Below are positions 1,824 to 56,398 of a stretch of 64,000 nucleotides of DNA, piece after piece. The position numbers were made by a program, and so were the translations under genes. Source of the stretch: Oopsacas minuta (taxonomy: Eukaryota > Animalia > Porifera); NCBI GenBank assembly GCA_024704765.1, contig JAKMXF010000323.1:292403-356402 (forward strand). The letters run 5' to 3'. Numbering within the stretch: position 1 is the stretch's first letter; each line of letters starts with the position of its first letter. The notes under the pieces were generated by a model. It made no database searches, was not told where the DNA came from, and was given only the letters and a program-made list of their open reading frames with translations.

Positions 1824-2735
1824 TTATCCAAAGACTACAGTCGAAACTTTCCAAAATGCACTTGGTTGCCAAGCTAATCATATATGTATGGGTGAAGTCA
1901 TTTTAAAATGGCTATAACTCCTAAGATACTTGAGCCTTGCAAAATTCTTTTCAAGGTGCACTCATACCCTTAGTTAGTTACTATTCAATATGTGGATTTG
2001 AGATTTTTCAGGAATTAGCGTCAGGCTGTCAGTGGTCCTACAGGGTGTTGTTCGGATGCTAGACGAGCTCCAGGTTGTAGAACATGATAAGGGGGACCAT
2101 TTATAGCGGAATAGGCGTAGATAGTTGATAGAGGTTGCTGATAACTCTAGGCCTACTGTTATAGTGTGACCATTGTCTAGGATCAGGATTTTCGCCAAAA
2201 TTCTTATTTGTCCAGGATTTAATACATAACTACACTGTAACCACTATAAGCAGGGCAACTTTGGTCCACCTTCATTCAATTTCCTCTATGACTGGGGAGT
2301 GGGGCCTACTTTAAGATAATTACTTTAAAGATAAATCAAAGCCAAAATCCAATCCGTATTTCATTTCCCACACAAATGTAAATCCATATCCAATCTATAT
2401 ACATTTCGAATACGAATATCAAAATCAAATCCACGAAATTTCATTGAACTGATGGATTCCTTTGGACTTTAGAGAAGCCAAATCCATCCGAAATCCATAA
2501 TCCACCCGACCCCCCTGCTCACATCAATGAAATTTACCTCTATAAGTGTGAAATTCTAACATAAATATTCTTGGATAATCAACTTTAGAGCTATATTTGG
2601 AGAAATACCCACATTTTTCGCTATAATGAATTGAAATATTTTGATGTCTCAGAAGAGATTTCTTACAAATATTTATATTCAACCAATAAACTTAGGGCAT
2701 ATTATAATAAGCCATAGCCTACTCTACATAAAGTC

Positions 2736-3784
2736 TAACAGTAACTTGTTGATTTTGGTCTAGGCCCACTAGAGATACGTAACTCGATGAAACAAATTCA
2801 ATGTGATTTCTATTTTGCATAAACTGTGCTATTTTACCCGAATAGATGTAATGCATATTTGTAGAGTAGCAAATTATCAATAATTTAAGCTTAAAAATTT
2901 CAGGAATGTGTCAAAATATGTGTCTAGTAAGCAATTATTTGTTAAATTATGCCATTCCTCTAAGCCCTGTAGAACGTTAAATATTGCATATTTCATTTCC
3001 AAGTGAACATAAGAAATGATCTATAGATAGATTGATAGAAAATATATAAAAATTGTCATACAAAGTTGGTCAGTTCTTGAGTTCCAGGAGCGACCAGGGA
3101 TGACACATTTTCTGATATTTCACTTATAACTTGATAATGGTTAAATTATGGTCGAAATCAAGATAGCCTCTATATAGTATATAACAGACTTCCCATACCA
3201 CAATTATAAATTTTGTAATGATATCTCTCACCAATATGGCGTATTGTTAATATACCCAAATGTGATCATTTTTCAAATTCCGCGATAAGCTTAAGAGTTA
3301 TCAAAAAAATATATTATCAGGTATGGGAAATCGTATATGTATTATATATTAGCTATCGTGATTTGACCATAATTTCAACGATTATCGAATTATAAGTGGA
3401 TTATCAGAAAATGTGTCATCCCTGGTCGCTCTTGTAAATCAAGAACGAGTCAACTTTTGTATAACAATTATTAGATATTTTGTATCAATCTATCTATAGA
3501 TCATTTCTTATGCCCACTTGGAAATGAAATATGCAATATTTTACGTTCTACAGCGTTTAGAGTAATGGCATATTTAACAAATAATTGCTTACTAGACACA
3601 TATTATGCTAAATTCCTGGAATTTCTTAGCATAAAATGGTTGATAAATAGTTATTCTACAAATATGCACTACGTCTATTCGGGTAAAATACCATAGTTTA
3701 TGCAAAATAGAACTCACATAGAATTTGTATCATCGAGTTACGTATCTCTAGTGGGCCTAGTCTAAAATCTACAAGTTACTGTTA
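2736..3784. repeat. Large foldback element, ~470-bp inverted arms around ~110-bp spacer
   Basis: Ends taacagtaacttg...caagttactgtta; arm matches traced throughout (ggcccactagagatacgtaactcgatga / tcatcgagttacgtatctctagtgggcc; gagcgaccagggatgacacattttctgata / tatcagaaaatgtgtcatccctggtcgctc). Confidence 0.9.
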
Positions 3785-4757: not shown

Positions 4758-5597
4758 TCAGAACATAAGAGAAGGCGACTTTTTAGATGAACTCAACTCA
4801 GCGCCAGATCCAGAAAATCCCATCCCACCTATCCTAAGTTTGATAATATCATTCTTTTCCAGAACATTCCCAGTGATTGGATGGGTCATCTCTCCAGTCT
4901 CCTTGATGCCAGATTTAATCAATTTCTCCACGCACTCTAATGTTACAACATCTCCTGTAGGGCGTAGAACTGCACAAGGTACTGAGTTACCAAGATTATC
5001 CCCCGTAACTGAACACACAAATGTATTGGCTTCATCCGAAGATGCTTTAAAAGAAACTTTAACCAAATCTCTCAGAGAGAGAGGATTCCCACTCATAGGA
5101 CAATAAATATTTTTATCGGGCTTAGAAATGTCATCTTGTACAACATCAGGAGTAAGCGTTGGTATCCAGAAACTCTTTAATCCTGTACTGAGATAATTTT
5201 TCGAACAAGTGGTGCGAGGGGCTGAGTTAGGGAGGATGCTATCTTCAGAACGCTTGAAATATAAAATTTCAGATTTTGAATTATTCTTCTCTTCTAAAGC
5301 TTTTTGCATAGAAATTTTCTTCATACGATTTTGATACACCTTTAATTTCTTGGAATATTCTTTTTTCTGATGAAAAATATATTCGAGTATGGCTTCCCTT
5401 TCGTAAAGAAAACCATTCGGTGTGATTACAGGGTTAATGCATGGTTGGAGAGTTAAACAGCAAGCATTAAATTTGTTCATTGAATCTTTAGACATCCGAA
5501 TTTTCTGAAGGCCATATCCACCAGAAATACTGTCTTTCAGCCTTTCGTGATAAGTGTATACTGCACCTGCAGTACAATTTTTGCCATGGCGGCTCAT
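4758..5597 (-). CDS. NOSIP: Nitric oxide synthase-interacting protein (U-box/RING-like), intronless 279-aa CDS
   Basis: N-terminus MSRHGKNCTAGAVYTYHER and motifs CCLTLQPCINPVITPNGFLYEREAILEYI, FWIPTLTP, CPMSG, GDVVTLECVEKLI, GGMGFSGSG match the NOSIP family. Confidence 0.95.
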   Translation of the reverse strand: MSRHGKNCTAGAVYTYHERLKDSISGGYGLQKIRMSKDSMNKFNACCLTLQPCINPVITPNGFLYEREAILEYIFHQKKEYSKKLKVYQNRMKKISMQKALEEKNNSKSEILYFKRSEDSILPNSAPRTTCSKNYLSTGLKSFWIPTLTPDVVQDDISKPDKNIYCPMSGNPLSLRDLVKVSFKASSDEANTFVCSVTGDNLGNSVPCAVLRPTGDVVTLECVEKLIKSGIKETGEMTHPITGNVLEKNDIIKLRIGGMGFSGSGAELSSSKKSPSLMF

Positions 5598-11612: not shown

Positions 11613-13689
11613 CAGTCAAACCTCCAATAGTGAACACCTCTCATTAGTGAACACCTCCAAATAGTGAACACTATATTCTGGTCCCAAATATTTCCCTACC
11701 AAATAATATTTATAAGAACCTCTCTTTAATGAACACCTCTATACTGTGAATAGTGAACACCTTATTTGAACATTTCATAAGTATCTCAATTAGAATGAAC
11801 CTCCAATTAGTGAACATGGGTCAGGTTTCTGAATACAAAATAAACAGTGTTATATGAAAAGCGTGAAAAGATAATGTCACATATGCATATACTACTAATA
11901 AGTTATCAATTGCCAACGTATAACGTACTAATACGTAGTTTAGAATTACTCTACCAACTCAGGTTATTTTAGCCATCTATCCGTGATGTCACTAAAAAGG
12001 AAAAATCTTACAATATCCGAAAAGCTCAATGTAATAGAATTTGCCTCAACGCACAGCCAGCGTGATGTAGCTGATCGATTTGGTATATCTGTGGGAGCCG
12101 TAAATAACATTCTTAAGAAGAAACAGGAAATCCAAATGGCTTGCGAAGAAAACTGTAACCCACAAATGAAGCGAGTTAGATTGTCTAGTCATTGTGAAGT
12201 TAATGATCTTATTTGGCAGTGGTTTGTAACAGCTAGATCAAAGAATATACCAATTTCAGGACCTATCTTACAAGCAAAGGGCATAGATTTTGCCGAACAA
12301 CTAGGTATACCATTCAAAGCCTCTAATGGCTGGTTGGAAAAGTTCAGGTCAAGGTACAATATAGCATTCAAGACACTATGCGGTGAAAGTGCCAGTGTTG
12401 ATCCGGGGACTGTTGATACATGGAAGCAACAATTACATACGATAATAGGTGGTTACAGCCCTGAAGATATTTTCAATTGTGATGAAACAGGTCTCTACTA
12501 TAAGGTTTTGCCAACTAAGTCTCTTGTAGAGAAAAACAAAATTTGCAACGGAACAAAGACGTCAAAGGATAGGTTGACAATTCTTTTGTGTGCGAATATG
12601 TCGGGTACGGAAAAATTGAAACTATTGATGATAGGGAAAAGTCAGAATCCTAGGTGCTTCAAACACATGGACTTTAGTCAAATGCCGGTGCAATGGAAAG
12701 CAAACAAAAAGGCTTGGATGGATAGTAGTATATTTGGAGAATGGTTGAAGGATATCAACAATAAAATGAAGCGACAAAAGAGAAAGATTCTTGTATTCAT
12801 TGATAATGCTACAAGTCATCCTCATTCAGTATTTAGTAATATTGAGTTAAAGTTTTTTCCTGCAAATTGTACATCCCAATTACAGCCAATGGATCAAAGA
12901 ATTATACAGTCTATGAAACTTTCTTATAGGAAGATCCTCTTAATGGATGTACTAAGCAGAGTTGAATCTTGTGATTCTGGGCAAGGACTAATTAAATCGA
13001 TCACAGTTAAGCATGCGTTGTATTGGGCAGCCCAAGCTTGGGAAAATGTCAAATCTGAAACTATTCAGAAATGTTTCGCAAATGCTGGATTTGGTTTCTA
13101 TGAACACGCAAATCTTGACCATGAAGAAAATATCCAAAATATGATTGATGATTTGTCTTCCAGTCTTGGAATCGAATGTTGTTCAGGAATTAACTTCATG
13201 AATATCGATGAAGAGGAACAATTACTGCATGCATATACTGATGATGATTGGGAAACACAGCTAATAGAAAATTATTTATCACCAGCAGACAATGAAACAT
13301 TAGAATTGGATGAAGAAAGCGACTCAGATATTCCAATCTCAAAAGCTCCAACAGTAAAAGAAGTACTGTATTCATTGGATGTAATAAAGACATTCAGCAA
13401 TAACGACAGTAAGGTGTTTGGAGCTGTAATGAAAGCTGAATCAGCAATCAAAGAGCTAATATCAGAAGGAACATGTCAAAGGCAGTCAAAACTTACTGAT
13501 TATTTGGAGAAAATTAATTAATAGCTAAAAACACATTAACATTGCATACTTAAATCATAATACATTTCATATAGCTTATTAAAATTTCATTGTTATACTA
13601 TTTCAATGTAACCTCTCATTAATGAACACCTCGCTATAATGAACAAAAAAATCGGTCCCGAGGGTGTTCACTATGGAGAGGTTTGACTG
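11613..13689 (+). mobile_element. Full-length Tigger/pogo DNA transposon
   Basis: TA flanks, TIR cagtcaaacctc...gtgaacacc / ggtgttcac...gaggtttgactg, clustered subterminal tgaacacctc repeats at both ends, intact transposase. Confidence 0.95.
11986..13521 (+). CDS. Tigger/pogo transposase (CENP-B N-terminal HTH, HTH_Tnp_Tc5, DDE_1), DD29D
   Basis: RKNLTISEKL, FKASNGWLEKFRSR, FNCDETGL, FIDNATSH, QPMD motifs; 29 residues between the 2nd and 3rd Asp (counted); no stops. Confidence 0.95.
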   Translation: MSLKRKNLTISEKLNVIEFASTHSQRDVADRFGISVGAVNNILKKKQEIQMACEENCNPQMKRVRLSSHCEVNDLIWQWFVTARSKNIPISGPILQAKGIDFAEQLGIPFKASNGWLEKFRSRYNIAFKTLCGESASVDPGTVDTWKQQLHTIIGGYSPEDIFNCDETGLYYKVLPTKSLVEKNKICNGTKTSKDRLTILLCANMSGTEKLKLLMIGKSQNPRCFKHMDFSQMPVQWKANKKAWMDSSIFGEWLKDINNKMKRQKRKILVFIDNATSHPHSVFSNIELKFFPANCTSQLQPMDQRIIQSMKLSYRKILLMDVLSRVESCDSGQGLIKSITVKHALYWAAQAWENVKSETIQKCFANAGFGFYEHANLDHEENIQNMIDDLSSSLGIECCSGINFMNIDEEEQLLHAYTDDDWETQLIENYLSPADNETLELDEESDSDIPISKAPTVKEVLYSLDVIKTFSNNDSKVFGAVMKAESAIKELISEGTCQRQSKLTDYLEKIN

Positions 13690-14810: not shown

Positions 14811-17800
14811 CGTGACCTACGTTAAATAAGGCTTATGCACTAACTTTGTGAACGTGGACCATGAATTAAAGGAAGGCTATTGATCAAATTTATATTGGGT
14901 CAGATATGATATTTAATTGTGTTTAATGATTTAGAAATGATATTGAAAAGTAAATACGTATTATTATGAGTCTACTAAGGTAGGAAAATACAATTCAATC
15001 TGAGTAGGTAAATTAAGAATGTTAATAAGAGGTGTAAATAGTACAATGGTACTTAACAAGGAAATAGTTACAAATGCACAATCTAAATCTACTAACAGTG
15101 TTCCCCAAATTCCTCCAATCAAGTACTTTTTTAAATTTCTTCAATTTCCTTGTATTTTCAGTATAAAGTCTATGTATAGAATTCATGTTCTTTATTAAAT
15201 TAGAGAGGAACAGTTAGTAACTGATGTGATTAACTTTTCTAGGATATCCCAAACAACTGTATCACAAATAGGATAGCTATGCCTCCAGCTTTGACTCTCC
15301 TCTTCTTCGATAATTTTTAGCGTTATTTTCACGATATGCTGCCTAGATGGTCCTTGGACAATATCTTTAAACAGTAGAGGGCGGTCTTCAATTGATTTAC
15401 AAATCTTCCATAAGGAAACAATGACTTCAATTACACAAGTAGATGGCCATTTCTGTGAACCTCGATCAATTAATTGGAAGAGTGTGTAAGCTGAGTGGAG
15501 TGATTCCCCAATTTCCATTTCTTTATCTTCGGTCAGAAAAGATAAACAGGCTTGACAACGGTTTGATTTCTTAAAGTAAGAAAAAATTGTATATCCAGCA
15601 ATAAATGCTAGTGCTTGAAGTGTTTGTATAGTAACAGTAATATCTGAATAATTATGAAGGGAAGATATGAACTGCTTATGATCTAAAGTTGGAAAAGACA
15701 ATGTTCTGAAGGAGTAGAAAAAGAGCCAATAAACTCGTCAATGTAAAGTTGTTCTTTTGAAGTCTAACAAGAAAATAATTTAAAATACTTGATAATTTGA
15801 TACGTCTTTCACTTTCGAGAATTTGACAATAGCTAATATGGTACTGAGCACCGGAATTCATTCTATATAACCAAAATGGTGTTCGGGTGGATCATTTTGT
15901 ATGAAAGAAGTGCGGACATAAGTATAATCACAATCCTGCATTAGGTAGTTTATTATGGCAATTATAGCGATACAAGAATGGCGAAAGCTTGTAAAAGTTT
16001 GAGTGGTGAGTTTTCCTGTTTTTGAGGCAAGTTTTTCCATTTATCAAGCCATTCAATGACTCTTGACAGATATTTGAGTCTTGAGTCATTCAAGAAGTAA
16101 CATGAGACAATTCGTCATTCAGGCGAATACCCTTTTAAGGGTTGTTAACATTAAACATTTCCAGGTATCACAAGTAATAGTGTTAAATTCAGCTGTGTGC
16201 AAATGAGAGTCGGAAGGAGTTTCTGAACAAACTTTGAGGGCAGAAGCAGTAGAATTATCAAAAACCCTCAATGCTAATTTGACATTCTGCCTCTCTAAAC
16301 TCGAAGGCCAATATGCCTTTGCTGTTAAGCGGGGATCCAATTTTGCTAGAGACCTTTGATCAGCTTTGTACAAAACTCGAATTATTCCGAAAGAAGCAGA
16401 AAGAATTAGGGAAAAATCTTCAAAGCTGAAAAACAAAATGTACAATTGATATCTTTCTGGTTTAGCCAGTTGTTCTGAATTGATTTCAGGATATGCACAA
16501 AATCGAATGGTAAGATTAAAATTCTATTTGAATAAAAAATATCGGGAACAATGGGCTCCAAAATATATACGTTGGTGAATACATCCTGAAGATGTTCACG
16601 TTCATAGGATAGTTATCTGTACATATAATGTTAACATACAATCCACACTCGATATCTTCTATCACTTGCTTGATAATAGGGATTATATCCATTGCAGATG
16701 TATTTGAACATGTTAGTAGACGAACGATGGTTGACCATTTTTTAGATAAGCTAGAAACCATAAAAGCAAATCTAGTTTTGGCTGGCTCAGAAATGTTCTG
16801 TGATGATCCTATAACACTCCCTCCTATATAAGTGAATTCTGACTTCACATGGATTTCGTCCATTTGGACAATCACATTTCGTTCTCTTTGGTTGAAATCA
16901 GAGGTAGCCTTTCCAAAAAAGTAATATATTCGCTATCCAGACCAATTTTGTAGATAAACGCTGTAGTGTTGTGTAATGTGGAAGAGAAAGTGAGTCAAGA
17001 GATTGCAAATAATGGTAGCACGCCGGAGAGATGAGTTGGCACTTGAGTGCTATTACAATAGTCCCAATGTTGTAGGTGCGATGAGTTTTCAGACGAAACA
17101 AATTATCCAACTGACACAGAATAAAACGTAGGGAAGATAAACAGTTGATTATCTTCTTGACAAACATCTTGTATTGCCTGTGAATTCGACAACTTATCAA
17201 CTGTTAGACGCAATTGTTTGGTCACTTGAACTCTGCTGGTTAAATGTAGGGGTTGATAATTCCTGTCTATGGTTTTCAATACCGATAGATGATATCTCTT
17301 CTAGCAAGTTGTCAATATCCCGAATATCAGTAATCTGCTTTATGTATTGGTAGATTTCTTTGTTGTTAGAGAAGCGCTTTGTAGAAAAAGAATCATTGAT
17401 CGAGAGAGAAGGTTCAATATAATGAGCACCAGTGACATCCGAAATAGCAGGTTGAATGAAATGGAGTTGATTCTCATCAGTAGGCCAAAGTATCCACTGC
17501 TTTGGAAGAGAAATACGGACAAGCTTAGATTTTAATTCTTCAAATCCAAGTACTTGAAATTTCTGTTCATCAATTGTTTTCTACTCCATATTCGGTTCCA
17601 TCCCAAGAACCAAGTGATCACGATCATTGGTGTTTAAGTCTAACCGAGTTGACGGAGTACGTGTACATTGGGTTGGGTTGGATAGGTAACTGGGACAACC
17701 GGGCAAAAACAGGGAACTGCAAGTGAGCAAAGTCTAGGGAGACTGCGTTTTTCTTGCAAGATGGAACCGTCTGGTTGAGGGATACTGAAGAAAAACTCAA

Positions 17801-18371
17801 TATCTTCTTCACGGAAATGTTTTAGGCAGAGGTAAATCTTCTTAATTTCCTCAATACATTCTCTGTGAAGAAATTGTTTCCATTGAGAAACTATGTGAGG
17901 TGGACCAATAGGAATCTTGAAAATGGGTGTGTGGTTCACCGTCATAGTTACTCCTACAACCAGGAGCAGAACAGTTATTTGGCATTGCCAGAGAAAAGTG
18001 TGATAGAAGTCCAATTTGAACCAAAGGATCAATTAAGTCAGTGGCAGTCTCAGGAGGGGCGCATTTGCCTCGGATTTTAAAATCTTGGCCTCGTCGGGCA
18101 AATGCTGGGGCCGTCCCTGAATTAAGTGTGGGAAATAGATAGGGCAAATATGAATTAGACAAAACGGAAGAGTGATAAAGTGGGAAAATACATTATTGAG
18201 GAAATATGATGAAAGAGTATTTATAAAATGATCTAAATCGTGATAAGATTCATTACTAATATTATCGAAAGAATAAGTAAAAGTTATATTTCATTAATAT
18301 AATAGCCTTCCTTTAATCCATGGTCCAAGTTCACAAAGTTGGTGCATAGGCCTTATTTAACGTAGGTCACG
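14811..18371 (-). mobile_element. P-element (THAP9-type) DNA transposon, degenerate
   Basis: ~72-bp terminal inverted repeats (14810-14881 / 18301-18372); imperfect 8-bp flanks tggtgact / acatgact; fragmented P transposase inside. Confidence 0.85.
15195..17985 (-). pseudogene. THAP-domain P-element transposase pseudogene (frameshifts/stops)
   Basis: THAP C2CH MPNNCSAPGC...W...LCLKHF...LAVP; then PACYHYL, QMDEIHVK, CTDNYPMN, ERQNVKLALRVF, QNDPPEHHFG, AFIAGY, LIDRG fragments typical of the Tnp_P_element family. Confidence 0.9.
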
Positions 18372-20230: not shown

Positions 20231-20702
20231 TGATTACTACAACCTTATCAAATTCACGATATCCCAAGTCGGTAGCCATCCCACGCTCCATTACTGAATC
20301 AATTTTTCCATGAAACGCCAGAAAACATTTTGTAAACTACTAAACTTATGGTATGACAGATGGAGAATTCAAAAAAATAAGAGTAAATTGAGTTCTGGGT
20401 ACTATAGTTCGCGTAATCTGAACTGAAACCAACTCTAGAAGTAAACCAGAACTACGATGTTGCAAAAATGAATATTTTTATCATATGTTCCCTTTGAGTT
20501 ACTCACATTTTTGTGCCTCTGAGTGTATTCTATTTATTCAAAAGTGTATATCCTGTATAAACTTAATTTCATCCATTTGCAAATGATTTCATAATATTTT
20601 CTATATTAATGCGCATTTTCTTACCCTGGTCCTTTTCGATGCATAAAGCTAACTTTACCAGCATCTTCTTCCTCATACACTTTTTGTATCACACCAATAT
20701 AC

Positions 20703-21506
20703 CAGGCACGTAACTAGAGCAAGAAATTCAGGGGGGGCAAGAAGTATTTCGGGAGGGCAATTGCAGGGATAAATATTTTTGAAAAGTTTATTACTTGTGT
20801 ATAACAAGTACGATCCAGTCTCCTTTTCTTACATGTATAACCTTTTAATTCATCAAGTACCAGATTACTAAGCTAGGGAGCACAGACTAGTCTACATTAT
20901 ATAGAATGCCATATAGTAAGAGCATTTATTAAGATACTAAACTCAATTCAGGGGTACTATTTGACATTACAAAAGAAAGCGGCGGTGCTTCATCTACTTA
21001 AAATGTTCGATCACATCATTATAACAAAGTGTTTCTGCAATATCTTTTTCAATAGATAACAGGGCAATATGGTTGAGAAACACAGTGGTCATTTGTGAGC
21101 GCAAACGAGTTTGTATTCTTTTAACAAATGAGAACATTCGCTCAACCTTGCAAGACGTCTGAAGGATAGTCACAAGAATTTGGTATAAAACAAGCATTGA
21201 AAACTGAAACACTAAGAGAATCACCAATGCTTCAACCACTTCAATGGATAGTCCAACTTCTGACAACAATTACTAGCGGTCTGTGGTAATTCAATTAAAA
21301 TTATAGTAGAAATTCAGTGCCTATCAAAATAGAACGAGTTTACTATCAATGAGCGTTACTTCCTGTTTAGTATTAAAACTATCATCGCAACGCGAGTTAT
21401 TAATTTCATAGTTTTGACGACGCAGTTGAAGTACATAGGCTATTAACTACAGTGGAGTTCACTTATTAGGAACTCGGATTTTGCAGAAATTTGGTTGCGA
21501 ATAGGG
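20703..21506 (-). mobile_element. Internally deleted copy of the 53201-56398 hAT, left (3') part
   Basis: Starts caggcacgtaacta, carries the last ~75 codons of the transposase, jumps at ~21188 to the 5' UTR region (missing ~53674-55901 of the master), breaks off at aataggg. Confidence 0.95.
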
Positions 21507-22094
21507 ATATACCCCCTTTTGAATTTTCAAACAACTTTTCAAATATATTCCTGATTTTGCAAGTTATATTGACGAACGATGGGCATCTCTTATAAGAATA
21601 CAGGTTATAAGAAGATGTAGATATAAGAACTTTCATCTACAAAACGATTCTCTTACACAGAATACCAGTTATAGGAACATATCGGTTGTAAGGACATATT
21701 TTGTTACTCCTTGGGTGATTTTATAAGCGATACTTTATTCACTAAATATTTAGATCAATTTTATTACTTTTATTTGTGCCAAAGTAGCCATCAGATTAGT
21801 ACTCAACATAAAATTTCCAGCAATTTGATTAGATCACTTGACCATCTATTTTCCATAGCAACCCAGGATTGTGACTTACACTCTCAATTTTTGTCCTAAC
21901 CCAATCGAGTTCGACGCCGCTAGCTACCCTCTAAATGACGCTTAAACACGACCTTCTATATCAACCACGCTGTCCCCGACCTTTCTTACTTATTTAACAT
22001 AAATATATGATTCTTTCTTGTATTTTGTTAATTACACGTAGCTATAAATTGATTTATTTATCGAATGGCGTTGATCTCCTAACTTGCCTAATTA

Positions 22095-24385
22095 CACAGC
22101 CCTGCGGAAAAAAAATTTTATTTGCTGATTGTTATTGCAAAACATTTTCTAATCCACATTTTAATACTGATTTTGAATAATTTTGTAAAATATACGTATC
22201 ACATCTAGTTTTTTTGCAAAATTATTTTTAAATATTGGTATATTTATCGATGAATGCATGATACCTCACAAGTAAAATAGTGAAAATCTGCCATTTATAA
22301 ATTTTTATTGATAATATAATCTTAGTTAATAAATAATTTGAATATATTAGTCTGAATCAGGAGTAAATTTCCGTTTTTTTGACATTCTAGCATGAATAAC
22401 ATCAATACAATCTCTCTTGAGGCACCAGCAGTAATCAGCCATCATATGAACGTCCCACCTCCCCTGATATCGTGTTTCCATTGTTTTTATGTCTTGGTAG
22501 AATCGTTCACCTTGCTCCTCGGAAACAGCTCCAAGATTCTCTGGAAAATAGTCAATATGACTGTGAAGAAAGTGAACTTTTACACTCATATTGCAGCCGA
22601 GATTCTTGTAAGGTTCAATCAACTCATTCACAAGTATTTTATAATTAGGAGATTTCGTATTTCCCAAGAAGTTTTTCATGACATTTACAAATGCATTCCA
22701 TGCACATTTTTCTTTGCATATCATAGAATTTGAAAAATTATCATCTCGAACAAGTTGTCTTATCTGAGGACCGTCGAATATACCGGCTTTTCTTTTTTCA
22801 TCACTTAGGTAGTAAAATTTCTCGGTAATATATTTGAAACAATTTCCTTCTTTATCTAATGCCCTTACAAACTGTTTCATCAATCCTAATTTTATATGAA
22901 GTGGTGGAAGCAAAATCTTGAGAGGATCCACTAGAGGCTCGTGAATAATGTTCTTATCTCCAACATTAAGATTGGTTCTAGCTGGCCAGCTCTGTCTAGA
23001 ATAGTGTTCGCTCTTTGCACGACTGTCCCATAAGCATAAAAAACAAGGGTATTTTGTATATCCTGATTGCTGTCCCAAAAGAATGCATATGATTTTTAAG
23101 TCACCACAGATTACCCAATTGTGCTGGTTATAATTAATTTTATGAAGCACAATTTTCATATTATCATATCGTTCCTTTAAACTTACTGAATGTCCAATTG
23201 GTATGGAACTAAATTTGTTGCCATTATGAAGTAGAACACATTTCAAACTTTGTTTTGAACTATCAATAAAGAGTCTCCAATCATTAGGTACATACGGACA
23301 TCCAAGAGCATTAACTAGCGGTGAAACATCATGACAAAACACAAATCCGTCTTCCATTATGAAATATTTCAAAAATTCGATCTCTCTGTTCCTATATGAG
23401 TAAAATTTTGTTTCTGGGAGAAGCAAGTTTTTTTCTTTTAGCCTAGAACCTAACAACTCCGCAGATTCTTTAGGTAAATCTAAATCACGTACCAAATCAT
23501 TTAATTCAGACTGATTAAATAACTGTGGAGAATTAGAACGAGATAATACACACGGAATAAAATCCTCATCTTCTCTAATTAATGAATCTCTAGTTTCACA
23601 ATTATCAATTTCCGAGATAACATCCAAATTAGTAAATTTTGGAACAGGTACATTAATTGAATGGGGAACGGGTCGTATTGCTGAATGTAAATTTGGATAC
23701 TTGATCAATGACTTGGTTTTAGCATTGAATCCGGAAATATTCACCATACAAATGTAACAATCGCTAATGTGATTTTGTGGCTCTCTCCATATCATTGGAA
23801 TTCCAAAACTTAAACTCTTTCTGATTCCTTTTGTCCATTGTCTCAAATTTTCTACACAAGATCGGCACACTGTATGTGGAGCCCATGTTTTGTCTTGATC
23901 ACCTAATCTCATTCCAAAATATCCTAAATATGCTTTTTTAACAACTCCTGTTATTGCCGTAGTTTGTTTAGGGGTCATAAAACTACCACAAATATAACAA
24001 AAGACGTCTGGATCATTAGTGCACCTTCTCCGATAAGCCATATGATAATAAAATATCAAAATAGTAGACTATAGTACAATTAAGCTGTATTTAACAAAAA
24101 TAAAAATAAAACAAATTATGTAGAAAAGAATGGAGTTAAAGGGACTAATTAGAAAATGCAATAAAGCACGCATCTGTTTATTTCAAAAGACAAAATTCAC
24201 ACATGTATCAAATATAATCATTTATTCTAGGGAAGTGTACTTAAAAAATCGACTTACATTAAATGACATTTGAGTAAAAACGAGACGTGATAGGGGAATT
24301 CTGATGACAGATTGAGAATCAGCATACTCAAGTTAACTAAAAACAACCCATGGATAATAATCAGCAAATTTGACGCAGGGCAGTG
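22095..24385 (-). mobile_element. Full-length Chapaev3 (CMC superfamily) DNA transposon
   Basis: Termini cacagccctgcg / cgcagggcagtg (CACWG), 3-bp TSD TTA both sides, intact ORF. Confidence 0.88.
22347..24059 (-). CDS. Chapaev3-type transposase, 570 aa (likely start at MAYRRR)
   Basis: Cys-rich N-terminus CYICG/HTVCRSC/DCYIC; LFIDSS, CGDLK, CFLC, LPPLHIKLG, HFLHSH, EQGERF motifs (C2C, LH, H4H signature of the CMC group). Confidence 0.88.
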   Translation of the reverse strand: MIFYYHMAYRRRCTNDPDVFCYICGSFMTPKQTTAITGVVKKAYLGYFGMRLGDQDKTWAPHTVCRSCVENLRQWTKGIRKSLSFGIPMIWREPQNHISDCYICMVNISGFNAKTKSLIKYPNLHSAIRPVPHSINVPVPKFTNLDVISEIDNCETRDSLIREDEDFIPCVLSRSNSPQLFNQSELNDLVRDLDLPKESAELLGSRLKEKNLLLPETKFYSYRNREIEFLKYFIMEDGFVFCHDVSPLVNALGCPYVPNDWRLFIDSSKQSLKCVLLHNGNKFSSIPIGHSVSLKERYDNMKIVLHKINYNQHNWVICGDLKIICILLGQQSGYTKYPCFLCLWDSRAKSEHYSRQSWPARTNLNVGDKNIIHEPLVDPLKILLPPLHIKLGLMKQFVRALDKEGNCFKYITEKFYYLSDEKRKAGIFDGPQIRQLVRDDNFSNSMICKEKCAWNAFVNVMKNFLGNTKSPNYKILVNELIEPYKNLGCNMSVKVHFLHSHIDYFPENLGAVSEEQGERFYQDIKTMETRYQGRWDVHMMADYCWCLKRDCIDVIHARMSKKRKFTPDSD

Positions 24386-24417
24386 TTATTTATGCTAAAA
24401 GGTTTAGAAAAATTGAT

Positions 24418-24640
24418 TAGTCTATATAACCCAAATCTATTATTAATCCTGAAAGACTACTCGTTCGAATGGGGATAGCTGATATTATATTTAATGAGAA
24501 GTCGGTTGATTACTCCAAACGGACGCTTATGATAGTTTGTGACAATTAACCGACTTCTCATTGAATACAATATTGGTTATCCTCATTCAAACAATTAATC
24601 TTTCAAGAGCGATCATAAAATTTGGGTAATATACACTCTA
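24418..24640. repeat. Small foldback palindrome
   Basis: aatgagaagtcggtt / aaccgacttctcatt core; outer aacccaaat / atttgggta. Confidence 0.65.
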
Positions 24641-25194
24641 CAAAATTTACCAACCCTTTAGCATACATATTTGGGTAGTTACAGAGATCCACACCCAGGG
24701 CCCTATAGCACTGTGTCCGAGAGCCAACAATAGTTTAGGTTAGGGAGAGAATCAAATAATGTGTAAGTGATGAAATCGGTGAAACAATTCACTGGAAAGA
24801 TAAGGCCTGAGTAAATTACGCTTATGAATGTTTTCAGCTACTCCGTAAATGTACTTTTTATATTAGGAATCCAAATATCAATTCAAGGTGATAGCTCTAC
24901 TGGGTAAGGTAACAAAGTACATCACCGCATACTCAAAATATTAGAGTCCCCGAGAAGGCCAGTTTGATTTTTCTCATTTTCAAAAACTAACAATCTTAAT
25001 AATTGCAGATTGGAACTTACTAGCTTCCTAGGGTTACCTGATATAAGGAATCCATTACATTCACGGACATCGCCATGGGGGGCATAGAAAGTAATGCCCC
25101 CCCCTGTCAAAATCTCATGCCCAGGGCATGCCCCCCTAGTGAACTCTCATTTATACCAGGGATATATCTTGTACTTATTGATCTAAGGACTTAA

Positions 25195-25560
25195 CCGAAT
25201 TCTCCCGGAAGGTGTGTGATTTTATGAAGTCAAAAGATCCTGAAATCTTGATTTGGGTGCGGGAATTGTGTAAAACGATGGGTGTAAATTACGAGTTCCT
25301 TTTCGCTACAAAGTAACACTCGCCGTATTTTGTAATAATGTAATATAATTGAAGATTGTCGTGTCATGAAGCAACCATTTTCGGCCTTTTGAGATTGCAT
25401 TCTGCAGAGTTGCCATAGTAAAAAATCACCTCAGGCTGTGTCGGCTCTTTTACAAAGTGAAATAGCTTCGCACTCTCAGTTTTGTGAAAATTGGGGTCAA
25501 AATATAAGTAAAAAAAGTAACTCTTACCATAGTTGAAAATACCTGATTGAATAAAATTCC
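25195..25560 (+). repeat. Unclassified dispersed repeat; related copies at ~56420-56780 and ~57195-57340
   Basis: Shared motifs gatttgggtgcgggaatt, gttccttttc..tacaaa.gtaacact, cactctcagttttgtg, aaaatacctg.ttgaataaaattc. Confidence 0.6.
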
Positions 25561-25715
25561 ATTTAGCCTAAACAATGATCTTTCTAGTGAATTTCTTCTC
25601 TAAATACACTAATGTTTAAGATTACTCACAGGTTTTACATGACTACTAGCCTGGTCAAAATAATAAGGAAATAGCCCCAGCCCCAAAATAATTGTAAGAA
25701 TTATTTAATTGTATT

Positions 25716-26015
25716 TTTCCATAGCATCATGTCATGGGAACAACATACTGAAAGTTGAAACGAATCAGGACAATCAGAAAGTGAGTTCTCGCAATCCCGT
25801 CGTTTACTCAGACTCAAAGAATTGCCGGTTTTGAAACCTGAGCTAACATTTTCAAATAATTGCAGATCATTGTTTTGCCATATTCGTGCTCAGTATCAAA
25901 TTTCAGGAAATTTTAGAAAACCGTAAATTTTTAGAGTCTGGAGTCAACGATGGGATTCTAAAAACTCACTTTCTCATTGTTCGATTTCGCTGAACTGTTA
26001 TTCCCATCATAATAC
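25716..26015. repeat. Foldback palindrome
   Basis: ttttccatag...atgggaa...agaaagtgagtt...aatcccgtcgtt / aacgatgggatt...aactcactttct...ttcccat...ctatggaaaa. Confidence 0.75.
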
Positions 26016-26491
26016 TATGGAAAATGCAATAAAACAATATCTTGCAAATTTTTTGACGTCATACATTATATTGACTGACTATAAATTCTATTTTAGTAGA
26101 AATATTATTTTTGTAATTTTTCCAATTTGTGAGTTCAATTCCATAATATTCCCTGTGATAGAGTAAAATGGCATTATGATTAGGAGTCGGCATAGTCACA
26201 ATCATTTGATAAACGGTGAGTTTAAGCATAATTAAGTCAGTATAGTAAATTGGGAAGGGTAATAAAATTACAATACTGTTGATTCAACTGTTTAGATTGG
26301 AGTACATCAAAACTCTACCAGAGACAGAAAGTTACCATCAATACACTCCATTTAGTCAAACATTATTAGGAGCGAAGCGTATTAGTGATCCGTTTTATTA
26401 CACGGTAACATATGACTTTAAAGCATTTCGTGTGACAACCTCACACCTTAACAATTTGTCACTTGTATGTATGACAAAGACTGGTATATTG

Positions 26492-26662
26492 CAGGCACGT
26501 AGCTACAAGGGGGGCAAGGGGGGGGCAGTCGCCCCCCCAAAAGTTTTTCTCGCCCCCTCCCCCAGATACATTTGGAGGTTTTGTTTGTACATACAGTGTA
26601 GTTAGCTTATTAGCAACCAGCTTTCGGGTCCCAAACAGGATTATAATGTTAATTTCGTTGCC
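26492..26662 (+). mobile_element. Missing right (5') end of the deleted hAT copy, in inverted orientation
   Basis: Reverse complement of ~56220-56398 (caggcacgtagctac...gggtcccaaac.ggattataatgttaatttcgttgcc); preceded by gtatattg, the reverse complement of the caatatac TSD at 20695-20702. Confidence 0.95.
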
Positions 26663-26779
26663 TTTGATAACATATTATTGAGAAATTGTTAAGTTGTATA
26701 ATATTCTTGTGATATTTCCTAAGAATAGTGATCTTGAAATATTAAGTATAATAATTACAAATATATATTAAGTTAAGTG

Positions 26780-28681
26780 TCATAGAGCAAGAGAAGTAGT
26801 AGTTATCTCACTACTTTTCTTTGCCAGGTGATTTAAAGTTTTGGCAGCTCTAATTACATCTTTTGAGAGAGGTTCCAACTTAATAGTATTAGCTACTACA
26901 TCGTAACATAACTGGTGTATTTCTTCTAAAGATGATACCGCAGACATTGTATGGAACGCGATAACATTAGCTTGAGAAACTATTTTTTCCAATTCGCCAT
27001 GTTTTTCTGCTGCCTCTTTTGTGTTGTTGGCTAGGCGAATAACTCCACTCTCTATATTAAACAAAGTATTTAACACCCAGATTAGTTTTGACCATGACTC
27101 ATGAAAGAAGGGTTCTGACCTCTCAGGAAGCTGTTTAGTGTTTACTGAAGCCTCACTTACCGCAGATAGAAAATACTGCATGAATTGCAACAAGTTACAA
27201 ACGGTAGCTAGTATTTCAGCATTCACAAGAGATTCATCAGTTAACTTCAAAACAACTTCTTCAACTAGATGACGAGATGTCGTAATGGATTGCATGGCTT
27301 GAGAACATACCTCTTTCATATATGCAAGCGCTCCTCTTGAAATACTGTTTGAGAGGTTACCGTTGTGAGAGAAAAATTGTTGTGCCTGAAGATCAAGATC
27401 AGGAGATCTATAATCATGGTGAAACTTACTTCCCCTACTGGTTCGCCTAGAATTTACTTGATATAGAACAAGTTGTGATACAAGAGAATTACTGATTATG
27501 CACACTATTGCATCAACATGTTTAGAGAGCTGTTTTAAAATAAGCTTCACGTCAACACGAGAACCTGGTTGTGTCGAAAATAGCATCTGTTTCATGCTCA
27601 GCCCTAAAGAAACTAACTCTTTACTCATTTCATCGGATTGAGGTCTTGTAATAATGCCGTTACAACACTCTACACTATGTGTTACGACCATTTCATAAGA
27701 AGCACTCATATTAAAAGCAGCGTGTCTCAAATTGTCACTCTCGGCGAATGGAATACTCTGTAAGTGGGATTTAGAGTTATAAAATGAATTAATAAAGTCT
27801 TTAGAGAACTGAAGAAGAAATTCTGCATGAGTTAGTAATCTATCAAGAGAAGTAATAGTCCTATGCTGTTTAAGATCACCGATCAATCTATCAATACGTT
27901 CAGAGCATAATTCTGGTACAGATCTAATGTGTTTGAAAAAGTCTGTTGGAGGAACAGAGGGCCTCACTGGGCGGAGATGCCTTGCTTGATCATCTATAAA
28001 TTTCGTTAGATGTGGATTAATGTCAATCCGCGGTTTTTTGCAAGCGAGAATCTCAGGCGTTAATTCAACATTAGGATCAGTGTTATGATACACTTCACTT
28101 TCATGAGAGATAGAAAGATTGCAATTTTCAGAATTATGGGGGGAAACTCCAGGGTGTGCTTCCGTAGATGCAGTAAGAATATCCACCAAACTAACTGGAA
28201 GGCTGAGTGGAAGGTGTGGAAGTTGAGGAGCTTGAATTGAATCATCTGGGGAGTCAGCTTCTATTGGTGCTTTATTATAAATAGCACATACTTTGCCAGG
28301 TGTATATAAGCCTAGATCCTTACTCCATTCGTCATCTGGGTGGTTGAAAATATCCATAGATTTGGTGGTAGAAAGATCTAATTCACTTTGGTATAGTTCC
28401 CGCATTAGTTCCAGCCGATTCCCGAATTTATCTAATTCCCAAAGAGTAGTAGTTTTATTTTGTTTGTTGTAGAGCCTAATTCCAATTTTTGAAGGTAATA
28501 TCGCTTCATTTTCTCCCTTTTCTGAACACTCAACATCTTCACGTGTAAAGAGGACTTTCTTTCCGAGATGCAAGGCAATAGCATTAGCCTCTTGCAGCAT
28601 CATTGATACTCTTACTAATTCAGAACCAGATAACTGAGGAAGAAACTCCATTACTTTCCGTTTTTCGTTAGCTTCGCGAGC
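26780..28681 (-). CDS. KIF14: KIF14-like kinesin-3, terminal coding exon (AREANEKRKV + 623-aa ORF)
   Basis: SMMLQEANAIA...LWELDKFGNRLELMRELY resembles KIF14 SMMIQEANAIS...FWSLEKFESKLAAMKELY (recalled from memory); acceptor ttttttatatag at 28682-28683, phase 0. Confidence 0.85.
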   Translation of the reverse strand, partial: AREANEKRKVMEFLPQLSGSELVRVSMMLQEANAIALHLGKKVLFTREDVECSEKGENEAILPSKIGIRLYNKQNKTTTLWELDKFGNRLELMRELYQSELDLSTTKSMDIFNHPDDEWSKDLGLYTPGKVCAIYNKAPIEADSPDDSIQAPQLPHLPLSLPVSLVDILTASTEAHPGVSPHNSENCNLSISHESEVYHNTDPNVELTPEILACKKPRIDINPHLTKFIDDQARHLRPVRPSVPPTDFFKHIRSVPELCSERIDRLIGDLKQHRTITSLDRLLTHAEFLLQFSKDFINSFYNSKSHLQSIPFAESDNLRHAAFNMSASYEMVVTHSVECCNGIITRPQSDEMSKELVSLGLSMKQMLFSTQPGSRVDVKLILKQLSKHVDAIVCIISNSLVSQLVLYQVNSRRTSRGSKFHHDYRSPDLDLQAQQFFSHNGNLSNSISRGALAYMKEVCSQAMQSITTSRHLVEEVVLKLTDESLVNAEILATVCNLLQFMQYFLSAVSEASVNTKQLPERSEPFFHESWSKLIWVLNTLFNIESGVIRLANNTKEAAEKHGELEKIVSQANVIAFHTMSAVSSLEEIHQLCYDVVANTIKLEPLSKDVIRAAKTLNHLAKKSSEITTTSLAL

Positions 28682-53200: not shown

Positions 53201-56200
53201 CAGGCACGTAGCTAGAGCAAGACATTCAGGGGGGCAAGAAGTATTTCGGGAGGGCAATTGCAGGGATAAATATTTTTGAAAAGTTAATTACTTGTGTATA
53301 ACAAGTACGACCCAGTCTCCTTTTCTTACATGTATAACCTTTTTAATTCATAAAGTACCAGATTACTAGGCTAGGGAGCATTAGATTAGTCTACATTATA
53401 GTAAGAGCATTTATTAAGATACTAAACTCAATTCAGGGATACTATTTGACATTACAAAAGAAAGCGGCGGTGCTTCATCTGCTTAAAATGTTCGATCACA
53501 TCATTATAACAAAGTGTTTCTGCAATATCTTTTTCAATAGATAACAGGGCAAGATGGTTGAGACGCTCAGTGGTCATTTGTGAGCGCAAACGTGTTTTTA
53601 TTCTCTTAACAGATGAGAACATTCTCTCAACCTTGCAAGACGTCTGAGGGATAGTCACAAGAATTTGGTATAAGTTGAAAACATCAGGGAAAATATCTTT
53701 GTCAATCACATCCAGTACATCGATCAAAGTATTTAGCTGAGATTCATCTTTCCGAGCAATAAACGAACGGAAAACTTCTATTTCACAATCTTTGATATCT
53801 ATTGCATACAGTTCAGATAGTGTATTCAATTCCTGTTTGTTAAGAAAGTTTTGAGACCTTGGTAAGCAGCAATCAGCAGCCTTCATGATGCCTGATTGAT
53901 CTGTACCAAAACGGGCATCCAATTCTGCTAAGATCTCGCGGACATTTTGGCGTAACAATATTTCAAGCTCTTCAAAGTTGGATGCGTTTGTGTGTCCAAC
54001 AGAGCTATTTAGATATCCTTCTCTAAACCTTTCTGGAAGACGCCGTTGCCTGATTGTGTCTCTTACATCAAAATTTTCGATTTCATATTCACCAGACAAA
54101 TCTTTGGCATATTCGACAACCTTGTCAAAATCGAAATTGACCAACCTTTCCCTTAGATCGGCAAGTAATATCAAACAAGAAGAAACAGTTGCTGTCGACT
54201 TCTGAAAAGCTTTAGTGCAAAAATCAGAGTAATCATACAGCCTACCAAAGTAAACTAAGATGGTCATAATTTTCTTTGTTTGTAGACTACCTAGTAAAGA
54301 TTTAGCAGCTAAACTTGTGTCTGCATCATTATCATTTCCAAATATGCTTAAAGTATCAAGTATGCAATCAAACCGACGCAGAAACCTTTCCACCTCCAAA
54401 GAACGGGAAGACCAACGAGTACTACATGAACGTGCAAGTTCAAGAGCTTGGACGTTGGGATAGCGCTCAACCTGGACGTCTATGAAAACTGCATGTCGCT
54501 TTGTTCCATTCATGAACGAATACGTCAAATCCAATATATCAAAGAAAGATTTCATCAGAGGATGTCGTTCAGCAGTTGCAGCTAATACAAAGTTAAGCCT
54601 ATGTGAAGCACAATGAACATATGTAGCATTGCGATAACCTGCTCCTTTCATGCGGGCTTGGACACCACCGTGTACTCCTGACATAACACTAGCCCCGTCG
54701 TAACCCTGCCCTACACATTTCAGAGGATCGAGCTCAAAAGGCTTAAGTAGCTCTATCAGTTTTTCAGAGATGGTGCCCGCATCCATGTCCTTCAATTCAA
54801 TAAAGCCAATAGCTCTTTCTCGGACATTACCTTTATGGATATATCGCAAAGAAGCACCTAACAACTCCTTCTTAGATGCATCTTTTACTTCGTCAGCTAG
54901 AATAGCATAACAAGACGCGATTTCTACTTCACTTTTAACATAGTCTAGAAGCACTGAAGCGAGTGATGTAAGCAAATCATTTTGAATATCTGGACTTAGC
55001 ATTTTTGCATTTCCTGGAAGACTTTCTATCCTCTTGGTCACATTGCTATCATATTTTCCTAAAAGTTCTAATATTTCAAGAAAGTTCCCTTTATTAAGCG
55101 ACTGATCTGATTCATCATCTCCTCGAAGAGGAATATCTTGTTTGGCACAAAAAGTAATAATGTCAAGAACAGTCATTAAATGTTTCCGATTGTCATCTAT
55201 GAATTTCTCATTTCGAAAATTTGGATCCAGTTGCTTATCTACCGTCCCTATTATTTGATGAATTGCCCAGACTTTCTGTGTTTCAACAGCTGCCATATGA
55301 CACACAGAACTATCGTGCTTCCTGCACTTGTCGCCAAGTTTCCTCCAGTCACAAAGTCCTTTTGTTGAAAAAGTTGCTTCAGCTGTTGATCCTCCAAAAA
55401 GCCGACACGGTTGGCAAAATATAGCATCGAGTTCTTTGCTATACTCTATCCAGGAGAATTGGGCATACCAATGAGTACTAAAATGTCTACCGGCCTCATT
55501 TTTTGGGAAGATAATAGAAGGCTGCCTCGGTTTCTCACCATTTTTGGACAAATCATTTACAGTCACAATTGGTGATTGTATATGAGTCGTGTTTAAACTT
55601 GGAGTTGAAATAGTTGTACAAGAATCGGAAGTTAAAGGGGTCGAAACTTGAAGACTCGTAACAACAGGATCTACCTCCTCATAATTTGAAGAGACGACAT
55701 GATCTTCGATTTCTATTCGATTTCTTTTAAAATATGCCTGAACTTTGCTTTGTTGTAGTCTTTTAGTCATCTAGAATTGTTTGAGATACGAGTCACTGAA
55801 CTGATTGAAGAACAGAAAATGTGAAAGATTTGATGATATAGAATGACTTTATAACTTATAGAGAATATCTGAAATTGGCTTCACTCATGTGTAAATTTCA
55901 AAACAAGCTTTGAAAACTGAAACCCTAAGAGCATCACCAATGCTTCAATTACTTCAATGGACAGTCTAACTTCTGACAACAATTACTAGCGGTCGTGGTA
56001 ATTCAATTAAAATTATAGTAGAAATTCAGTGCCTGTCAAAATAGAACAAGTTGACTATCAATGAGCGTTACTTCCTGTCTAGTATTAAAACCATCATCGC
56101 AACGCGAGTTATTAATTTCATAGTTTTGACGATGCAGTTGAAGTACATAGGCTATTAACTACAGTGGAGTTCGCTTATTAGCAACTCGGATTTTGCAGAG

Positions 56201-56398
56201 ATTTGGTTGCTAATAGGGCAACGAAATTAACATTATAATCCCGTTTGGGACCCGAAAGCTGGTTGCTAATAGAGCAATATTACTAATAAGCTAACTAAAT
56301 TGTATATAAAAACGAAAACTTCCAAATTTATCTGGGGGGGCGAGAAAAACTTTTGGGGGGCGACCGCCCCTCCTTGCCCCCCCGTAGCTACGTGCCTG
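53201..56398 (-). mobile_element. Full-length hAT element (DUF4371/Tip100-like), 3198 bp
   Basis: 14-bp TIR caggcacgtagcta, perfect 8-bp TSD atttataa, intact ORF. Confidence 0.97.
53452..55770 (-). CDS. hAT transposase, 772 aa (TTF-type Zn finger, DUF4371, hAT dimerisation domain; ZMYM1/THAP12-like)
   Basis: WYAQFSWIEYS..DAIFCQPC, GNFLEIL, ILADEVKD, GQGYDGA, HCASHRLN, STRWSS, KVERMFS; no stops. Confidence 0.95.
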   Translation of the reverse strand: MTKRLQQSKVQAYFKRNRIEIEDHVVSSNYEEVDPVVTSLQVSTPLTSDSCTTISTPSLNTTHIQSPIVTVNDLSKNGEKPRQPSIIFPKNEAGRHFSTHWYAQFSWIEYSKELDAIFCQPCRLFGGSTAEATFSTKGLCDWRKLGDKCRKHDSSVCHMAAVETQKVWAIHQIIGTVDKQLDPNFRNEKFIDDNRKHLMTVLDIITFCAKQDIPLRGDDESDQSLNKGNFLEILELLGKYDSNVTKRIESLPGNAKMLSPDIQNDLLTSLASVLLDYVKSEVEIASCYAILADEVKDASKKELLGASLRYIHKGNVRERAIGFIELKDMDAGTISEKLIELLKPFELDPLKCVGQGYDGASVMSGVHGGVQARMKGAGYRNATYVHCASHRLNFVLAATAERHPLMKSFFDILDLTYSFMNGTKRHAVFIDVQVERYPNVQALELARSCSTRWSSRSLEVERFLRRFDCILDTLSIFGNDNDADTSLAAKSLLGSLQTKKIMTILVYFGRLYDYSDFCTKAFQKSTATVSSCLILLADLRERLVNFDFDKVVEYAKDLSGEYEIENFDVRDTIRQRRLPERFREGYLNSSVGHTNASNFEELEILLRQNVREILAELDARFGTDQSGIMKAADCCLPRSQNFLNKQELNTLSELYAIDIKDCEIEVFRSFIARKDESQLNTLIDVLDVIDKDIFPDVFNLYQILVTIPQTSCKVERMFSSVKRIKTRLRSQMTTERLNHLALLSIEKDIAETLCYNDVIEHFKQMKHRRFLL

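Follow-up and report, generated by a model that had tools for sequence, protein, structure and literature searches.

A hAT transposon split by a 5.2-kb inversion in the sponge Oopsacas minuta

Two fragments of a hAT transposon lie about 5 kb apart, on opposite strands, in a 64-kb stretch of the Oopsacas minuta genome (contig C323, positions 292403-356402; 35% GC, zero N; hereafter the window, with coordinates counted from its first base). We asked whether they are the remains of two insertions, or the halves of one insertion that was later torn apart by an inversion of the DNA between them. The first-pass annotation of this DNA had proposed the latter, with repair mediated by microhomology. 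We compared both fragments with each other, with the full-length member of the same family in the window (the 'master' element) and with the whole genome sequence (61,460,524 bases in 365 contigs). The features on which the answer depends, including the target-site duplications (TSDs) and terminal inverted repeats (TIRs), are the following.

20695-20702, plus strand: left copy of the TSD, caatatac, 8 bp, read directly; an 8-bp duplication is the norm for the family
20703-21506, plus strand: left part of a ~965-bp non-autonomous hAT copy, equivalent to master 1-473 and 2700-3018; BLAST identity 92-94%
21505-21506, plus strand: GG of the element, recurring as CC at 26661-26662; the 2-bp overlap of the halves at junction 1, from the alignment
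26484-26491, minus strand: second copy of the TSD, gtatattg, the reverse complement of caatatac, read directly
26492-26662, minus strand: right part of the split copy including the right TIR, equivalent to master 3017-3198; BLAST identity 81%
53201-56398, plus strand: master, the full-length reference hAT element, with atttataa as TSD on both sides

Direct reading placed the left TIR (CAGGCACG) at 20703, immediately after caatatac, and the end of the left half, ...aataggg, at 21506. The right TIR begins, reverse-complemented, at 26492, immediately after gtatattg, and the right half ends at 26662. When the master was searched against the window by BLAST, three matches were found besides the master itself, all of them in the split copy: master 1-473 matched 20703-21188 (92%), master 2700-3018 matched 21187-21506 (94%), and master 3017-3198 matched 26662-26492 on the minus strand (81%). 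The halves thus complement each other and overlap by 2 bp, at master 3017-3018; in the alignment every base of the element occurs once across the two halves, save for this overlap. The 8-mer gtatattg has a single occurrence in the window. Direct reading, together with BLAST for the right half, therefore bore out what had first been noted of the deleted left copy, of its continuation through to the TIR on the opposite strand and of the reverse-complementary flanking 8-mers.

We then rebuilt the element in silico by joining 20703-21506 to the reverse complement of 26492-26660. The resulting 973-bp sequence is a single collinear element with caatatac on both sides, and BLAST aligned it over its full length, as one block, with eight intact ~965-bp copies located on other contigs, at 86-93% identity. 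The best overall match was the copy designated L003. A multiple alignment of the master and seven intact copies gave the family sequence across the join as ...ggttgctaatagggcaacgaaatta...; relative to it, the left half ends after aataggg and the right half starts with ggcaacg, so that only GG is shared. The left half is 94% identical to the intact subfamily copies, and the right half is 87-89% identical to its closest relatives among them. The right half carries a 17-bp deletion that is also present in three subfamily copies (L003, L009 and L013).

At the base composition of the window, an 8-bp reverse-complement match is expected by chance with a probability of ~3e-5. By our estimate, the requirement that two independent truncations of a ~965-bp element abut within 2 bp contributes a further factor of ~5e-3. 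The combined chance of matching duplications and abutting truncations is roughly 1e-7 (~1 in 10 million), which effectively excludes two independent insertions. Both halves thus belong to one insertion, which was later split by inversion of 21507-26662, as had been proposed. Both TIRs still adjoin the original target duplication, and the breaks fall at subfamily position ~804 and in unique DNA. Normal transposase cutting was therefore not involved, in agreement with the earlier remark that the break lies inside the element and not at a TIR.

The family to which the split copy belongs shows the 8-bp TSD, the short TIRs and the transposase dimerisation domain of the hAT superfamily. The ends of the master and of the subfamily copies read CAGGCACGTAGCTA ... 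TAGCTACGTGCCTG, beginning with CAG. The transposase is encoded within the master by the following open reading frame (ORF).

53452-55770, minus strand: 772-aa transposase ORF of the master, with DUF4371 and the hAT dimerisation domain (Pfam)

DUF4371 scored 87 bits in this ORF, and the hAT C-terminal dimerisation domain (PF05699) scored 31 bits against a cut-off of 21.4. Across the genome we found at least 25 full-length copies with 95-99% identity to the master, which, together with the intact 772-aa ORF, suggests that the family has been active recently. At least 10 genomic copies of the ~965-bp derivative carry an identical deletion of master 474-2699 and form a non-autonomous subfamily. 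Since this deletion is common to all of them, it predates the insertion of the split copy and is unrelated to the inversion. Among seven intact ~965-bp copies the 8-bp TSD was perfect in two and differed by one base in two more.

A conserved imperfect palindrome, ATTTgGTTGCt-AATAG-gGCAACgAAAT (56201-56227 in the master; 21486-21506 plus 26652-26662 in the split copy), has its 3′ foot at the break inside the element. The 81-nt fold at the palindrome has a z-score of -2.9, no more than a hint of local fragility. The GGTTGCTAATAG motif recurs in degenerate form ~55 bp beyond the palindrome and may be a subterminal transposase-binding repeat.

How could the inversion have arisen? A ~965-bp non-autonomous hAT element would have inserted once, generating caatatac as its 8-bp duplication. 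That chromosome would afterwards have suffered two double-strand breaks, the first inside the element, ~170 bp from its right end, and the second ~5 kb further to the right, in unique non-coding DNA. End joining would then have put the intervening 5,156 bp (now 21507-26662) back the other way round, leaving the right end of the element and its TSD reverse-complemented at the far side. Two double-strand breaks followed by inverted rejoining are very probably the best explanation of the locus: the halves have a single origin, the topology is inverted, and the junctions contain neither repeats nor transposon ends. Indeed, a repeat scan revealed no inverted repeats at the breakpoints (the longest pairs nearby are 14-28 nt, imperfect and of the size expected by chance), which excludes recombination between inverted copies. 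We also considered an excision footprint of another hAT element at the second breakpoint; this candidate was rejected because the flanks, gggtatat and tttgataa, do not match.

The pathway of repair we can only infer from the junctions. The first-pass annotation had read an AGG microhomology (21503-21505 and cct at 26661-26663) and had favoured microhomology-mediated repair. The alignment of the junctions to intact copies demonstrates neither point: the element bases common to both junctions are GG alone, and the A of the proposed AGG falls outside the register of the element, whose sequence here is tagggc. By our reading, the non-element side of each junction shows no overlap with the inferred parental sequences. 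The GG could be a microhomology of 2 bp (provided that CC stood at the ancestral second site), a filled-in staggered break, or a 1-in-16 coincidence; it fits a filled-in 2-nt staggered break followed by non-homologous end joining (NHEJ) at least as well as it fits microhomology-mediated joining, and a preference for the latter is not established.

The model of inversion through staggered breaks, fill-in and NHEJ is established for the Drosophila melanogaster group (Ranz et al. 2007, PMC1885836). As in those inversions, the rearrangement described here is balanced, its breakpoints are free of repeats, and bases of one breakpoint, though few enough for coincidence, recur inverted at both junctions; GG at both junctions could be a minimal form of the Drosophila signature (PMC1885836). 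The two cases differ in scale, with 2 bp duplicated here (and 4 bp in a second case, described below), where the median in D. yakuba is 321 bp, and with an inversion of 5 kb against inversions of chromosomal size (PMC1885836). They differ also in that the ancestral state is inferred here from the split transposon, and in Drosophila from an outgroup genome (PMC1885836).

Three points weigh against the proposed sequence of events. The inverted state and the ancestral second breakpoint rest on a single assembly. The right half is only 81% identical to the master and 87-89% identical to its closest relatives, in a variable region rich in runs of G. The overlap of 2 bp is also too short to tell repair pathways apart.

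By comparing the strands of left-end and right-end matches genome-wide we found one other anomaly of this kind, on contig C2. There, master 1-840 matches the minus strand at 65509-66347 and master 837-3198 matches the plus strand at 66839-69199, so that a 1,330-bp inversion (C2:65509-66838) splits the hAT copy. The TSD, TAGTGAGA, adjoins both TIRs, with one of its copies reverse-complemented. One break lies inside the full-length copy and the other 491 bp out in the left flank; both junctions contain AAGA (4 bp), and on the side away from the element they again show no overlap. The C2 copy is 99% identical to the master, which points to a recent inversion. The inverted duplications at the junctions, 2 bp (GG) in the window and 4 bp (AAGA) on C2, are short enough for coincidence. 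In all, two of the ~40 copies inspected in this hAT family are split by inversion, a proportion shaped by the design of the search, in which an inversion is seen only if it cuts through a recognisable element.

Among the alternatives, the one that survives best is that the 5.2-kb segment was oriented wrongly by the assembler. The published O. minuta assembly (365 scaffolds, about 61 Mb, 36% G+C) was built with SPAdes from Illumina and corrected PacBio reads, then scaffolded and polished (PMC10280926); such a hybrid short-read and PacBio draft, scaffolded and gap-filled (PMC10280926), leaves room for an error of this type, and the left junction falls within a repeated element. An orientation error, however, requires the segment to be bounded on both sides by inverted repeats, which it is not. 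Both junctions connect element sequence to unique DNA without scaffold gaps, there are no runs of N in the window, and the structure is balanced and reciprocal. Since SPAdes contigs are, as we infer, paths through a short-read k-mer graph, a junction free of overlap should need read support. We therefore consider an assembly artefact quite unlikely.

Replication template switching through microhomologies of 2-3 bp, similar to microhomology-mediated break-induced replication, would account for the few bases that the junctions have in common, GG in the window and AAGA on C2. The rearrangement is, however, neutral in copy number, with no duplicated or triplicated segments, and the non-element sides of the junctions, as read above, show no overlap; the explanation is very unlikely. 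Alternative transposition by the hAT transposase itself, of the reversed-ends or sister-chromatid type known for maize Ac/Ds, is a documented route from hAT elements to inversions (10.1101/2021.03.08.434479), and the numerous full-length copies and intact transposase ORF described above make the family look active. As in maize, a hAT-superfamily element is found at the breakpoint and a flank of kilobase scale is inverted. In the maize inversions, however, the breakpoints coincide exactly with the ends of the transposon, and the junctions carry a newly made 8-bp duplication (10.1101/2021.03.08.434479). In contrast, the breaks described here are internal to a single element or lie in unique DNA, and 2 bp (GG) are shared at the junctions where a new 8-bp duplication would be expected. 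With these defining features lacking, alternative transposition is highly improbable. Finally, a pair of opposite insertions, each truncated afterwards, and ectopic recombination between inverted copies are both scarcely conceivable even in a family with dozens of copies, given the chance of roughly 1e-7 derived above for the former and, for the latter, the presence of a single element's worth of sequence where two complete chimeric elements would have been left.

Two breaks with inverted rejoining thus remain the preferred explanation, and the DNA that they displaced or bordered comprises the following features.

21507-26483, minus strand: inverted DNA that once flanked the element on its right; non-coding except for the 2.3-kb transposon nested in it
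22090-24389, minus strand: the nested transposon, a young 2.3-kb TIR element that contains a 570-aa ORF; at least 40 genomic copies, 94-99% identical
22347-24059, minus strand: 570-aa ORF of the nested transposon
26663-26779, no strand assigned: unique DNA outside junction 2, from the breakpoint to the stop codon of a 623-aa ORF
26780-28651, minus strand: the 623-aa ORF, single-copy and opening with ATG, from the ORF list; 117 bp separate the stop codon from junction 2

Outside the nested transposon, the inverted former flank (21507-22089 and 24390-26483) has no second copy in the genome and contains short ORFs only; 26663-27560, outside junction 2, is likewise unique. A search of the genome with these three intervals found neither an uninverted haplotig nor a paralogous copy of the flanks, so that the ancestral second breakpoint is not recoverable from genome copies.

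The nested transposon has the ends CACAGCCCTGCG / CACTGCCCTGCG. We considered it as a cause of the inversion and rejected it: its ends (22090 and 24389) stand off from the junctions by 583 bp and 2.3 kb, which makes it a passenger. Its 570-aa ORF had no match in a Pfam search; feature matches in the Atlas were to unnamed arthropod and sponge clusters, with a weak lead (0.82) to a RAG1_RNase_H cluster. The 623-aa ORF appears to be a single exon and also had no Pfam match. An identical sequence is present in the Atlas, where structural leads to clusters of the kinesin-3 tail (KIF1B) were weak (TM <0.25 by query), and no upstream exons that would make the ORF a kinesin-like gene were found within 7 kb. 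A look-up of the ORF aimed at independent contigs from public runs turned up no record, in a resource that may not show records of this genome. Elsewhere in the window we noted a pogo/Tc5-type transposase ORF (DDE_1, HTH_Tnp_Tc5) at 11983-13521, an exon of a NOSIP-like zinc-finger gene at 4758-5597 and a weak THAP-domain ORF at 17640-18032.

The inversion is a new instance of a well-known type of rearrangement, an ordinary scar of breakage and rejoining, which placed a breakpoint 117 bp downstream of the single-copy 623-aa ORF. It is rather unlikely that the O. minuta genome has an unusually high rate of kilobase-scale two-break inversions that leave duplications of 2-6 bp at their junctions; if it had, the rate might stem from something that repeatedly causes staggered double-strand breaks, or from a bias in repair, and not from isolated accidents. 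No outgroup is needed to read this inversion, because the split transposon and its TSD record the ancestral order. A genome-wide count of split transposons with reverse-complemented TSDs could yield an outgroup-free estimate of the rate of small inversions in the compact genome of an early-branching animal. The main value of the inversion described here lies in the ready PCR (polymerase chain reaction) marker that it offers for structural polymorphism in O. minuta, and in the one data point that it adds to such a count.

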